From Paragordius varius (Eukaryota; Animalia; Nematomorpha), in assembly GCA_964247055.1 (NCBI GenBank), contig OZ176052.1, positions 9,982,001-10,046,000 of the forward strand: a stretch of 64,000 nucleotides of DNA, in the 5' to 3' direction. Below the pieces are notes generated by a model that was not told the origin of the DNA, searched no databases, and worked only from the letters and a program-made list of their open reading frames with translations. The first letter of the stretch is position 1. Each line of letters begins with the position of its first letter. Below are positions 11,435 to 40,807 of the stretch, in pieces. Position numbers and translations under genes: made by a program.

Positions 11435-14400
11435 TTAATTGGAAATTTTAATATTTCGGCCCAAAATCCGTATCAATTTTTCGTCTTCAAGTTCACGCAA
11501 GCCCTTATCAAAAAGATCACGGGACACAAACTAAATAAATATATATGAATCATTATAATCAATATTTAAAAATATTATTTTACCATGCATTAATTTAATG
11601 TTTCTTATTATTAAAATTACAAAAATGTAGTTAACACGTTGTTTTATGCGTTGAATAATATTAAATACACTTGTTAAGTGATTGAAACAGTTTTGATAAT
11701 GCAAATTATGGTAAAATATTGCGTCCAAAAAATTAAACTAAATTTAAAATCTTAAAAATTATAAGTTATAAAATTAGTTATTTTATATCAAATATAAAAA
11801 ATACTGCATCGGAGGAATCCTTAAATTCTTGGTACAAATTTATGATAGGCACACTGGAAGATTTCGGTTTGGAATCTATTAATCTATAAAACAAATTTAA
11901 AAGCATATATGAATTAACATTTTAATTGAAATTTTTATCATAAAATTAAACAAACAATATGTTTCTTACTGTCGCAATGCTTCCAAAAATTGTCCAAATT
12001 TTTTTCGAGTTTCTGAACTCTGACCAGTTGCTAAAATACTCATGTCAATTAATCCCGTGGTTGGGTCAGTTATCGTTTGTTTAAGCGCGTCCTTATATAA
12101 TCTATCATATATTCATCAATATAAAAAGCGATGTTATTTGTTTCAAAAGAAAATAATTATTAAAAATTAAAATTATATTACTTCCGAACCAATTATAAAA
12201 ACCCCGAAAAATTTACACACATCCCTTTCACCTTATTATTTTTTCCAAAACGATTTTTCACTTTAGGATAAATAGACTGAATATTTAGGGTGGTGAAATA
12301 AAACCTTTCAGCCTCGGTCACATCTTCTAATTCGACGATTGGTGACCAGCGCATTTTAGCATGAGCCTCAGATAACCTTATTAACGATTCTAATTGCCTT
12401 GGGTATGCGCTTATGAAACCTTTTGTCGCACCAATCTGTTGAAAACGTATAAAAAACCAATGATTTAATTATATATATGTAATAAGTTTTGGTTATTTGC
12501 TTTATATTAATAATTAATTTAAACTTTTCTCATGTTGACATATGCATCCAATAAAGTTTCTCGGGCTATCTCACTAAGTTTTGGATGAATATTTTCGCGG
12601 GCATATTTAATATAATCCTTCAAGACTTTTTGATCCTATATCAAAAAATATAAATATTTAATAAATAATAAATTTATATTGAAATCTAAAAGCAAATTAA
12701 GGTGGTCAGTTAAATAAATCGATAATTATATAATGGGATAATCTGAATATCAGATAAATCTTAAGGTTATGGTAAAAAATTTATATGTCATAATTTAAAT
12801 AAAGATTCTGCAAAATTTTAATTTTTAACTCCTTTAAATTGAAAATAAAATTATTATATTACAATTATTTCAATAGCTTCAGAAGTTGGTAAATCATTAT
12901 TATTATCTGTCATATGTATATCATTATCATGTCCATTTTCAATGGGATCGCCATTCATTAAATGAGTATCATTCGGAGATGTTTTATGAGATTTTTCTTG
13001 CTTGTAGTATAAACTAATCAAGTGATTGGATAATTTACGATCAAATTTTTCCGATTGATAATCCAGCAATAAAAAGATAAGATCAAATCTAAAAAATATG
13101 AAAACAAAAGACATACATTCAGGATAGAATGATTTGGTATTTTATGGATTTAATAATAAAAAAATGGCTAATTATCCACATGATCTTATTTAAAAAATAA
13201 AAAAATTGAATATTTTTGTCTGAAATTTAATTAATAACCGTTTTTTGACAAATTAAAATCAGTTAATTTGTCTGAAAGACCACCAATCTAACATTATAAA
13301 CCCTTGAAAAAAATTAGGTTAATCAACTTGCGTTAATTAGTTTTGGTCGTTTGTTATACCATATAATCTCATTATGAGAGGAAGATAAGATAGATAGATA
13401 CCTTGATAGCAAAGTATGTGGTAGTTGAATATTTTCCAAAATTGTTTTTTTGGTATTCCATTGAGAATCAATTGGATTCGCTGCAGCCAAAACACAAGTT
13501 CGAGCATTCAATTGACAAATAATACCAGCTTTTGCAATCGAAAGAGTTTGTTGTTCCTAAAAATGGCATAAAAACAGTCAAAGATGTGTAGAAAGATCTA
13601 TTCAAATTGGACCCTTAAATTAGGTAAATGATTAAATATTTTTGTTAATATTAATAGTAAAAATTTTTTTACCATAACTTCATGAAGGATAGACCTGGTT
13701 GCATCATTCATTTTATCAAACTCATCAATACAACAAATACCCCGATCGGCTAAAACTAAGGCACCTCTATTTTAGTAAAAAGGTAAATATAAATATACAG
13801 TTTAGAGTCTCTTTTTTCCTTTTATATCGAAGGGTAAGGACTTAAATTGTATCCAGACATGTGAAGGCTTTAACACTCGCCTTCTCAGGGCTGACAGTGA
13901 TGATGGAAAAATTGCGTAGTTTCGGGCTTCGAACTCTGGCACGCAGTGTAAGAGTCCGACGCCCTATCTACTATATAAAAATATTTTTCATATCACGTTA
14001 AAATATTGCAAAAAACATAGAAAATATGACTTAAATTTAGAAGAATTATAAAGCGTATAGATACGTTTGTAGAACAGCCTGTCCAGTTTCCACATCTTTG
14101 GAAACATGAGCGGTTAAACCAACAGCAGTAGAACCCCGACCATTAGAGAACTGGCTCCTGTCAACTAGCCCATGAACGTAACGTAATAACTGAGATTTTG
14201 ATGTCCCAGGATCCCCGCATAATAATATATGAATTTGAGACCTGTAATTAAACATGAAATTAATCCGTAAAAGGATGTCAACTTAAAAAGGAAAAATTTA
14301 TTTTTAAAATCAAACCTGCAATTCCCTTTTCCTATCCCTTTAAAATCTTTGTCTGTGCCCCCAAACAATTGTAGCAGTATGCCCTTTTTAATATCGATAT

Positions 14401-38200: not shown

Positions 38201-40807
38201 AATCCAACATAAATTTAATTTTAAGAGATAAAAAATATGGATAAATATCAGAGCTAAGCTTTTTTAATTAATCATAAAATATGAATTTATTAATTATCTT
38301 TTAAAAAAAACTATCAATAACACATACAAAATTCATGTCATTTTCTTAACAGATTAATAAATTTTTCAAAACGTATATTTTTGATACTACCAACATAATT
38401 AAAAAGAAATTTACTACACCAAAATTTAAAAAACTTGAAAAATATTTTGGATAACTCCTAATTTATAAACATGACAAACTTATAAATATTTAAAATTTAT
38501 AAATTTTATTTGTTCACTCATGATACACACATATATCAAATATTTTACTTTGCAGGATGCGAGTTAATTTGGAATCTCGATAAGGTATGTGAGTATTTTT
38601 CCCTTCAGCAATGGCTGATATAACCTTTCCAAGCGTGCAGAGCGATAAATTAATTTTGGTTGATTCTTTAAGGCGTTCACCCTTTAAGATAATAAATTTT
38701 GTAAAGTATTGTTGGTATGTGCATATATAAGATCATTAGTTTTATAATATTGTCATAGGAAAATACATAAATTATGCAACGTTATAAACCATATAAATTA
38801 CAGTATTATACGAATTGTACTTTAATCAAGTGATAAGGGTATATTTCAATATATCACAAAAAACTATGAACCGACAAGTCAATACTATTTTACAAGAAAA
38901 GTGTTTTTTCAATATAATTAGTACTGAAAATAATAAAAGTTAATCAATATCCATGTTTATAATCTCACAAACTCGAATGTTAAAATGTAATAGGCACATA
39001 CATCTTTCAAAAATAATTAAATGATTTAGTCTCTATATAAAAATAAAAATTTTTAAAAATTAGAATGTTTAAATAAATATACCGTGGCTCCAGTTTTTGT
39101 TTGTCGTTCGCTTCCAGCCAGATCTACCAAATTTAATTGACCTACGCACAAGTGTTTCTGTCCCTTTTCATCCGTCTGCAATATAATATAAAAAATAATG
39201 AATGATAATTTATAAGGCTTTAATACACAAATAGGATATTTTATTAAATCAAAATTATTAATATATATTATGCAAATAATTAGCTAATTAAACTCAATAA
39301 AAACACAAGAGAAACGGTACAATAATCAGTTAAAAGCAATTAGTATTTACTCTACTAAATGATATCCTACTTTGGAAGATTCTATGGTAACTATGAATAT
39401 AGCATGGGATCTTGAACTGTGTTCATTCATATTTGTGGCCCTTTAATTAAATTTTTGAAAATATTAAATATATTTATTCAAAAAAATTTAATTTTATATC
39501 GTTAATATGAATTTAAAAAAATATAAATACCCGGTAGAACGATTCACATTGCCACGTTGCATAAGCTCGTATATTTCATCGAAATTTTTGGTAACAATAG
39601 CGGATAGACCCTTTAAATTTTATATATTAAATAATAATAAATAGACTATAATTTAACCGATTAAATGGTATAATCTGCTACATTGCAAAATTCACAAAAA
39701 TTTAACCAATTTAATTTCTGACAAATATAAATAAACTTTATTTTAATATCTAATAATTATTGCATGTGATAAAGAGTAGCAAATTGGAATTGGAAGAAGT
39801 CAGTAATATATATGCAACGGTCCGATTCCAAACAAAAGTATGATTTATTGTTAATGTTAGTAGCGAGCAATTTTTCCAAACATTAAAAAATTCTCGGGAT
39901 ATTTAAAAATAAACAACTAATAATTTTAAATATAATCTTATCAAAAAATAAACAAAATCATGTATATTTATTATAATACTTTCAGTATGCATTTTAATGG
40001 TTGCTTATTTCACACTATAGTTGGGCAATTTGCAACACAATAATGTATGGAAAAAACAACATATTGAATAAACAAAGTAATGTGAGTAAGGAAAATATTA
40101 TTTATTTAACATTGTGTTGTATTTTCCATCTACTACTGTGTTATAAATTAACCAACTAGAGTGTGAAATAAGCAACCATTAAAATGAATACTGTAATGTT
40201 TTAACGGTGATACATAAACCAGAAAGCTTTCCAATTTACCTTAATAAGTATGTTTGTGGTTGTATTTTTGGTCTCTTTAATTTCGATCTTAGCCTCTTTG
40301 TTCGATGAGTCTACCAAAAGATCTTTAATGCATTCCTTGTAAATTTCCAGATAAGATGCTTTAACCAAAAAAGTTGAATTATTTTCTGCAAATATTTTGG
40401 AATATATCTGTTTAAGTGAGAGTGGTATAATACCATCATCTCCGGAACAAGTATTACCTTAAAAATTTACACAACGGAAAACCTTCCATAGTGAATGTTT
40501 TTCCGGTACCAGTTTGTCCATAAGCAAAAATGGTGCCATTAAATCCTTGAATAACAAAATCTATAAGCTCGCTTATACAGCTATCATAGATGTCTTTAGT
40601 CATGGATTCTTGATCAAAAACTTTATCAAAAGTAAACGTATAAGATTTATTAGCTTCATTGCCTAAGATAATTTGATTTTCAATTGAATTAACAACACTA
40701 AATAATAATTTTGATTACTTGAAACATCTTTGCTCTAATTCCTTTTTGGTAAAAGGTCGGATCCTCACTATTACTTTAATGCGTTCATATGAGTTTGTTG
40801 AACACAT
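32283..40807 (-). CDS. Kinesin-2 family motor subunit (KIF3B/KIF3C-like), ~18 exons
   Basis: Spliced translation gives [36 protein letters not shown] (P-loop), NEHSSRSH (switch I), [11 protein letters not shown] (switch II) and [14 protein letters not shown]. Kinesin-2 hallmarks are [16 protein letters not shown], a coiled-coil stalk, LIIENFIP and KKPLSSFGY. Ends SVFKLPK-TAA. The exact orthologue cannot be fixed without a tree. Confidence 0.92.
33387..34769. mobile_element. Foldback element with ~400-bp inverted arms and subterminal ~20-bp repeats, in kinesin intron 16
   Basis: The left arm (ccatttcccagtcaaaaaaacg...cgggactaactc) is the reverse complement of the right arm (gagttagtcccga...ttttttgacaggaaaatag). 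Repeated ttttcccagtcaatcgaaac-type units sit at both ends. Flanked by TA-rich sequence on both sides. Confidence 0.72.
33918..34209. mobile_element. hAT-like MITE nested in the foldback spacer
   Basis: Starts CAGGGGTGTTAAA, ends GTTGGCCACTCCTG, with internal GCGGGCCAC motifs typical of hAT MITEs. No matching TSD seen. Confidence 0.5.
38016..38039. repeat. (TA)n microsatellite directly after a kinesin splice donor
   Basis: The minus-strand intron begins GTATATATAT...; read directly. Confidence 0.9.
40458..40482 (-). other. 25-nt spliceosomal intron (kinesin intron 2)
   Basis: GTTTTCCGTTGTGTAAATTTTTAAG. Removal joins KTFTMEG to [11 protein letters not shown]; the unspliced frame hits TAA. Confidence 0.85.
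40698..40718 (-). other. 21-nt spliceosomal intron (kinesin intron 1)
   Basis: GTAATCAAAATTATTATTTAG contains an in-frame TAA. Removal gives [14 protein letters not shown]...FTFDKVF. Confidence 0.8.

Follow-up and report, generated by a model that had tools for sequence, protein, structure and literature searches.

Predicted introns of 21-25 nt beside longer introns at the 5' ends of two genes of the hairworm Paragordius varius

Genes and introns of the window

The window is a 64,000-nt stretch of contig OZ176052.1 of Paragordius varius (Nematomorpha), in which genes for an MCM4 helicase, a leucine-rich repeat (LRR) transmembrane protein, a KIF3B-type kinesin-2 and PEN-2 were modelled. Elsewhere in the window no other host genes were apparent, and no snRNA gene was found in it. 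Database searches were run exon by exon, and the spliced models were only translated and aligned locally. The features are as follows.

11435..17114, minus strand: MCM4 gene, 17 coding exons and 16 introns, 892 aa when spliced, in one open frame
13790..13975, no strand assigned: very high-copy repeat in MCM4 intron 9, depth ~6e5 versus ~800 nearby
16596..16620, minus strand: MCM4 intron 3, 25 nt, phase 0, ancestral position
16831..16909, minus strand: MCM4 intron 2, 79 nt, normal-sized, between two tiny introns
16986..17010, minus strand: MCM4 intron 1, 25 nt, phase 2, 92% AT
19728..24715, minus strand: LRR transmembrane protein gene, 3 introns (1,014, 322 and 136 nt)
32283..40807, minus strand: KIF3B-type kinesin-2 gene, 19 coding exons and 18 introns, 775 aa
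33377..34779, no strand assigned: fold-back element with nested inverted arms, making up most of kinesin intron 17
34886..34934, minus strand: putative 49-nt kinesin exon, placed from frame and splice sites only
39980..40196, no strand assigned: hairpin (MITE-like) element in kinesin intron 3, 87-nt arms, 84% complementary
40458..40482, minus strand: kinesin intron 2, 25 nt, phase 1, ancestral donor position
40698..40718, minus strand: kinesin intron 1, 21 nt, phase 2, in-frame TAA, ancestral position
40849..41154, plus strand: PEN-2 gene, intronless, Pfam PEN-2 E=1e-34

The spliced MCM4 product aligns over its full length with shark MCM4 P0067 at 47% identity, and its start is probably the ATG at 17114; the ATG at 17068, which would serve as the start of an unspliced frame, was rejected (homology score 48 versus 85). 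The high-copy repeat of MCM4 intron 9 has a second, partial copy near 42800. The LRR protein has its best match in Gordionus sp. (Nematomorpha; 42% identity), the closest relative found, and its gene has three introns, none of them tiny and each at a distance of >2 kb from the ATG; a candidate 54-nt intron was rejected because the 62-nt exon that it requires breaks the frame. The closest PDB matches of the kinesin are KIF3B and KIF3C. PEN-2, for which a homologue search returned no matches, is arranged head-to-head with the kinesin gene, the two ATGs being 41 nt apart.

The 49-nt kinesin exon was apparently missed in the initial annotation of this DNA, which had traced 36 introns with lengths up to ~2.1 kb. 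The 2,056-nt kinesin intron breaks the frame, and the additional exon would split it into introns of 409 and 1,598 nt, so that the longest intron is reduced to ~1.6 kb and the number of introns in the three genes rises to 37. Their median length is 194 nt in this repeat-rich window. Four are tiny (21-25 nt), 33 measure 63-1,598 nt, and the absence of lengths between these sets held on recounting (0 of 37 introns at 26-62 nt). No hidden AT-rich GT-AG segments of 18-36 nt with lengths divisible by three were present in the modelled exons. The earlier description of the longer introns as filled with transposable elements (TEs) is overstated, since clear repeat or TE content was found in just three of the 33.

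Identity and size of the tiny introns

The tiny introns, two in MCM4 (25 and 25 nt) and two in the kinesin gene (21 and 25 nt), were recovered at the places and sizes first reported. All four have GT-AG termini and, 6-12 nt from the 3' end, A residues that occupy no fixed position, and by frame and homology their removal restores full proteins, with the exact size of kinesin intron 2 less certain. Three of the four occupy ancestral positions, at the codon and phase of introns in shark, brachiopod, nematode, rotifer and fluke genes; at these three sites the counterparts in other animals range from 35 to >2,400 nt. At the DNA level the segments are confirmed as predicted introns, and sequence comparison supports the proposal that very short introns of spliceosomal type coexist with normal ones in an animal genome that is not compact.

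Each intron was compared with competing splice sites. MCM4 intron 1 gives the highest homology among 22 in-frame GT/GC-AG alternatives, and after its removal YGTP runs into RQRPDLGS, as in shark; the alternatives with a GC donor, of 40 and 46 nt, are weaker. Its position is not common to shark or rotifer, the two compared. MCM4 intron 3 is spanned by homology without gaps, and its codon and phase are those of a shark intron (108 nt) and a Gordionus intron (at least 2,435 nt). For kinesin intron 1, the 21-nt form is the best in-frame alternative by homology, and its codon (11 residues after RP) and phase are common to Lingula (593 nt), Toxocara (447 nt) and Adineta (47 nt); a 63-nt version was rejected because it removes 14 motor-domain residues and misses the ancestral site. 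Lingula, Toxocara, Adineta and Heterobilharzia have the donor GT of kinesin intron 2 at an identical base following TME/TMQ/TIQ, and the Heterobilharzia intron at this site is 35-38 nt. Protein homology alone cannot separate 25 nt from in-frame lengths of 13, 31 and 43 nt for this intron; the ancestral donor position and a conserved Gly favour 25 nt, with the exact acceptor less certain.

Independent reads from four DNA runs of divergent individuals, picked by a word share of 0.32-0.33 (near the exon-only expectation of 0.385), were compared over MCM4 only (5,871 nt). Runs presumed to be RNA shared almost no words with this stretch, and none of them was found to contain it. Both MCM4 tiny introns are present in short-read contigs of three samples, which rules out assembly error as their source. 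Intron 1 has its 25-nt form in runs X3, X4 and X5, and in run X1 a 2-nt insertion and a substitution produce a 27-nt form, which is stop-free and the majority form in that run; MCM4 intron 1 thus tolerates a 2-nt indel. A variant at 16601 abolishes the internal competing AG of MCM4 intron 3 in three runs. Of the 12 indel variants listed for MCM4, one is in intron 1, and the others are likewise confined to modelled introns.

It is very improbable that the segments are something other than introns of these sizes, be it assembly errors, pseudogene lesions or parts of longer introns that use neighbouring splice sites. The similarly scoring alternatives for kinesin intron 2, the GC-donor alternatives for MCM4 intron 1 and the restriction of the read check to the MCM4 introns leave some room for such a reading. 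Against it, the short-read contigs reproduce both MCM4 segments, neither the MCM4 nor the kinesin gene shows other damage, in three cases the GT and AG coincide with the ancestral codon and phase, and each alternative of at least 60 nt deletes conserved residues.

Length gap, 5' position and possible origin

The lengths were initially described as bimodal. The gap in the log-length distribution is significant under three unimodal nulls (p=0.001-0.005, with a small sample), but a mixture fit judged by BIC gives several components no preference over a single one. The start codon is less than 500 nt away from each of the four tiny introns (p=1.6e-4 within genes, p=6e-5 when pooled; a post hoc test on two genes), so the reported location at gene 5' ends is true in the window. 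Two of them are not first introns, at 325 and 494 nt from the ATG, and the 79-nt MCM4 intron 2 is flanked by tiny introns, which means that the 5' region is not exclusively tiny. As noted earlier, all three 25-mers start with GTTTT, a donor shared by only two of the 33 longer introns (Fisher p=0.005, post hoc); the 21-nt kinesin intron has an ordinary GTAAT donor. G at donor position +5 is found in none of the tiny introns and in five of the 33 longer ones, and weak donors characterize the long as well as the tiny introns. The TTATTAT sequence to which attention had been drawn is indeed present in three of the four tiny introns, but it is not significant as a motif: some 7-mer is common to three of four shuffled introns in 13% of trials.

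The explanation that we prefer, with a probability of roughly 0.55, is that ancestral U2-type introns shrank and are removed by the ordinary major spliceosome through intron definition, persisting at the 5' end with the help of the cap and of decay. At least three ancient introns would have shrunk to 21-25 nt in the hairworm lineage, while downstream introns would have stayed at 63 nt or more, some of them taking up repeats. The major spliceosome, already operating on reduced donor signals in this genome, may remove the tiny introns by recognizing both ends across the intron, as has been proposed for the 5'-clustered microintrons of flukes (PMC6530080), and an A residue 6-12 nt upstream of the AG may serve as the branch point. 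Two effects may account for the persistence of tiny introns mainly near the 5' end: U1 would load there with help from the cap-binding complex, a process reviewed in PMC4889658, and a retained 5' intron would give an early stop that is well detected by decay; early stops are better detected by nonsense-mediated decay (NMD) (PMC8997360).

Several observations fit this explanation poorly. The distances of 325 and 494 nt exceed the ~250-nt range suggested for cap effects in Drosophila, and an intron of 79 nt stands between two tiny ones. The only tiny intron with a length divisible by three does carry an in-frame stop, as first pointed out, but the argument from NMD rests on that one intron, and the 27-nt allele of MCM4 intron 1, common in one sample, is a stop-free counterexample. 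The sample itself consists of four introns in two genes.

If the introns are real, their 5' bias might instead reflect mutational or regional compaction of gene fronts, by deletion bias or insertion exclusion in promoter-proximal DNA, with a spliceosome that would accept 21-25 nt anywhere; we consider this rather unlikely. The closeness of the kinesin and PEN-2 start codons means that non-coding DNA is minimal at that gene front, and the length of the Gordionus orthologue of MCM4 intron 3 (>2.4 kb) indicates that the site itself needs no short intron. However, plain deletion bias predicts the intermediate sizes that are missing from the window, and MCM4 intron 2, located in that 5' region too, is 79 nt long.

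It appears improbable that the 21-25-nt class has a splicing mode of its own, dedicated or remodelled, in which U1/U6 pairing is altered, branching factors are trimmed or a cap-dependent factor takes part. The clear length gap and the excess of GTTTT donors would suit such a mode, and altered branching factors have been proposed for the 15-16-nt introns of Stentor (PMC9505925). Opposed to it are the absence of any spliceosome component from the window, the weak donors of the long introns, the ordinary donor of the 21-nt intron and the lack of significance of TTATTAT. Moreover, the U2 system with which myxobolids remove introns of 22-27 nt is apparently conventional, and no unique motif marks the microintrons of flukes.

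Comparison with known short-intron systems

In a 2026 survey of 51 animal genomes, introns of <30 nt were found only in myxobolids and Dicyema (PMC13644364). Introns go unmentioned in two hairworm genome papers, among them that on Gordionus, which gives 71.6% BUSCO completeness, and no published report was found that combines a 5'-clustered class with a size of <30 nt, nor one of such introns in Nematomorpha. Nematomorpha might be a third animal lineage with introns of <30 nt, where they would be a minority that forms a discrete class, is spliceable only near the cap and shares its pre-mRNAs with introns of kilobase length; this proposal is tentative, and we would sooner doubt it than assert it. 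If it is true, the hairworm would add a third origin of such introns among animals, an ecdysozoan one, and would offer a natural system with an internal control for studying the determinants of the lower size limit of introns and the way in which the cap relaxes that limit: with tiny and long introns on the same transcripts, the steric lower limit of splicing and its dependence on cap distance would be testable in one genome. At a default minimum intron size, gene-prediction software would leave such genes with truncated or frameshifted 5' ends, and this could inflate apparent gene loss in hairworm genomes.

The 5'-biased bimodal pattern as such is already published for neodermatan flatworms (PMC6530080, PMC4040987). 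In Opisthorchis felineus, intron lengths peak at 37 and 90 nt, and long introns also occur (PMC6530080), and Gyrodactylus salaris has modes of ~32 and ~58 nt (PMC4040987). As in the hairworm, a separate short mode exists beside longer introns in a parasite, is enriched at the 5' end and at intron positions 1-2, has no unique motif and is missed under default gene-finder settings. The fluke KIF3B orthologue even has 5' introns of 32 and 35-38 nt, one of them at the site of hairworm kinesin intron 2, and was split into two gene calls, which bears out the initial warning of mis-annotation. In contrast, the neodermatan mode is ~32-37 nt, whereas the introns of 21-25 nt described here are below the 30-nt floor; neodermatans belong to a different phylum and the hairworm to the Ecdysozoa; and the splice sites of fluke microintrons are reported to be closer to consensus than those here, with GTTTT starting three of four.

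Myxobolid Myxozoa, with median introns of 22-27 nt, and Dicyema, with a median of 27 nt (PMC13644364, PMC6543705), resemble the hairworm in size range, retention of ancestral positions, reduced donor signal and parasitic habit, and their U2 and U2AF are reported to be conventional (PMC13644364). Their tiny introns are the genome-wide majority, whereas those of the hairworm are a small minority within the window, with a median so much higher that a survey based on medians would miss them. Ciliates, with introns of ~25 nt in Paramecium and 15-16 nt in Stentor (PMC8997360, PMC9505925), are similar in intron size, weak signals and the expectation of intron definition. Paramecium favours introns that are visible to NMD; the hairworm offers both a stop in its sole tiny intron of a length divisible by three and a stop-free 27-nt allele. 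Unlike the hairworm, ciliates are protists with uniformly tiny introns.

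Gene structures and support for four tiny introns

The window DNA is AT-rich and of animal origin. Homologues were sought in databases exon by exon, and scripted tracing gave full-length open reading frames for three genes:

11435..17114, minus strand: MCM4, 16 introns, 892 aa
19728..24715, minus strand: LRR transmembrane protein gene, 3 introns, 1,171 aa
32283..40807, minus strand: KIF3B-type kinesin-2 gene, 18 introns, 775 aa

Four of the 37 introns are only 21-25 nt long; the others range from 63 to 1,598 nt:

17010-16986, minus strand: MCM4 intron 1, 25 nt
16620-16596, minus strand: MCM4 intron 3, 25 nt
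40718-40698, minus strand: kinesin intron 1, 21 nt
40482-40458, minus strand: kinesin intron 2, 25 nt

The initial annotation recognised the same four tiny introns, but it counted 36 introns, the longest about 2.1 kb, as a model without a 49-nt kinesin exon would give; that model is out of frame. The modelled exons of the three genes contain no further AT-rich GT-AG segment of 18-36 nt with a length divisible by three.

Three of the four tiny introns shift the reading frame, and the 21-nt intron contains an in-frame TAA. When every in-frame GT/GC-AG pairing around each site was compared, the tiny cut gave the top homology score for MCM4 introns 1 and 3 and kinesin intron 1. For kinesin intron 2, cuts of 31, 25, 13 and 43 nt score alike against homologues; the 25-nt cut is favoured by a conserved Gly and by the donor position, since GT is at the identical base in Lingula, Toxocara, Adineta and Heterobilharzia, a fluke whose intron there measures 35-38 nt. 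Kinesin intron 1 (phase 2, 11 residues past the RP motif) matches exactly the position of introns of 593 nt in Lingula, 447 nt in Toxocara and 47 nt in Adineta. MCM4 intron 3 shares its codon and phase with a 108-nt intron of shark MCM4, and its codon with an acceptor in the hairworm Gordionus sp. No upstream exon was found within the 2,435 nt available at the Gordionus MCM4 locus (L001, 21181-23615), so this counterpart is at least ~100 times longer; within it (>2.4 kb) an inward-rectifier potassium channel gene begins on the opposite strand. The position of MCM4 intron 1 is not common to the shark or rotifer genes; removal of this intron joins the halves of a conserved N-terminal motif, which are in different frames. 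The four segments are almost certainly real introns of about these sizes.

The four sequencing runs compared with the MCM4 stretch (11380-17250) are DNA: their contigs span the introns, and no joint matches an intron. Assembly error was rejected for MCM4 introns 1 and 3 because both 25-nt segments are reproduced in short-read contigs. All 12 listed indels (best-supported variants only) fall within modelled introns, exons making up 46% of the stretch. A variant at 16601, present in three runs, abolishes an AG 5 nt ahead of the true acceptor of MCM4 intron 3. At several percent of intronic positions the samples diverge from the window sequence, which marks this as a highly polymorphic species or species group.

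MCM4 intron 1 is 25 nt in runs X3, X4 and X5, and in run X1 a 2-nt insertion and a substitution (window 16991-16995, depth 872/980) create a 27-nt allele that is the majority form. Retention of tiny introns had been proposed to be policed by NMD; the sole tiny intron of length divisible by three does hold a stop, but as a single case this has no weight. Divisible by three and stop-free, the 27-nt allele reads through, and as judged from its frame is a counter-example to strict policing that leaves a statistical bias unrefuted.

Length gap, position and repeats

For the 37 introns, log-normal, log-uniform and floor-plus-exponential nulls give p=0.001-0.005 for the length gap from 25 to 63 nt, and a Gaussian mixture compared by BIC is neutral between one component and three (about 24, 80 and 300 nt). 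Measured from the ATG, the starts of the tiny introns are at 89, 104, 325 and 494 nt, giving permutation p-values for 5' position of 1.6e-4 within genes and 6e-5 pooled; the gap and position tests are post hoc and based on two genes. Among the remaining 33 introns length shows no trend with rank.

A dedicated splicing mode for the tiny class might account for the length gap and for GTTTT donors, found in three of four tiny introns versus two of 33 long ones (p=0.005, post hoc). It is unlikely, and nothing positive favours it besides these two features. The motif TTATTAT, also proposed for this class, is not significant after allowing for motif choice, and donors are weak throughout, with G at +5 in 5/33 long introns and 0/4 tiny ones.

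The long introns had been described as filled with transposable elements; clear repeat content was found in only three of the 33. Repeats and other elements of the window are:

13790-13975: short repeat of very high copy number in MCM4 intron 9, depth about 6e5 as against about 800 nearby
27489-27635, plus strand: short decayed reading frame
33377-34779: fold-back element in kinesin intron 17, with sequence in common with 47993-48205, immediately ahead of the satellite array
about 48300-64000: long satellite array of near-identical units, occupying the last quarter of the window

The MCM4 intron 9 repeat has, by eye, a B-box-like motif and so is possibly a SINE. The decayed reading frame resembles what we take to be a mariner transposase motif.

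Intron shrinkage and the 5' bias

Comparison of gene structures shows that old introns shrank to 21-25 nt near gene starts and downstream introns did not. Because an intron of 21-25 nt is too short to hold a full donor, branch site and pyrimidine tract, the simplest means of removal would be intron definition, with a branch A near the AG. Similar removal has been proposed for myxobolids and Dicyema, in which U2 and U2AF look conventional (PMC13644364).

The favoured explanation of the 5' bias, with a probability of roughly 0.55, is joint: the cap-binding complex may aid U1 loading (PMC4889658), and failed splicing may be cheaply disposed of via early stops (PMC8997360). Against it, two of the four tiny introns come later than first in their genes, at distances above about 250 nt. 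The main rival, that gene fronts are compacted in general, seems distinctly less probable; the kinesin/PEN-2 spacing argues for it. Features at the gene fronts are:

40807, minus strand, and 40849, plus strand: kinesin and PEN-2 start codons, head-to-head, 41 nt between
about 24720, minus strand: acceptor-like AG site 4 nt before the LRR ATG
about 40857, minus strand: acceptor-like AG site ~50 nt before the kinesin ATG

This spacing implies that the 5' UTRs or promoters of kinesin and PEN-2 (101 aa, coding sequence intronless) are minute or overlap the neighbour. The acceptor-like sites could reflect an intron in the 5' UTR, trans-splicing or simply chance.

Comparison with Gordionus and other animals

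The LRR protein has by far its top match in Gordionus (42% identity), where its counterpart also adjoins MCM4, in opposite orientation. Conserved MCM4 exons match Gordionus at ~75-80%, as against 51-72% in shark and 54-69% in rotifer, and of the 14 window MCM4 introns from intron 3 on, 11 occur at the same codon in Gordionus. These matches make the source very probably a horsehair worm, of a genus other than Gordionus. In the part of the gene covered, Gordionus MCM4 introns are as short as 46 nt. Their acceptors (L001, 16100-21200) are nearly all AAG, with 3' ends A-rich rather than pyrimidine-rich; those of the window are mostly TAG. No report of introns below 30 nt in Nematomorpha was found in the openly accessible literature, and introns go unmentioned in two papers on hairworm genomes.

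In Opisthorchis, intron lengths peak at 37 and 90 nt, long introns also occur, and the microintrons are clustered and 5'-enriched (PMC6530080); Gyrodactylus has modes at 32 and 58 nt, the short mode at intron positions 1-2 (PMC4040987). In Heterobilharzia KIF3B (L086, 6001-6510), introns of 32 and 35-38 nt lie near the start, and the annotation splits the gene in two at the second. The hairworm pattern parallels the microintron mode of parasitic flatworms, from which it differs in that its tiny introns are below 30 nt. In size these match the introns of myxobolids and dicyemids, where, unlike in the hairworm window, tiny introns are the majority. On present sequence evidence the feature is real and very probably adds a third lineage to the animals with introns below 30 nt, here in a 5'-biased and bimodal arrangement as in flatworms.
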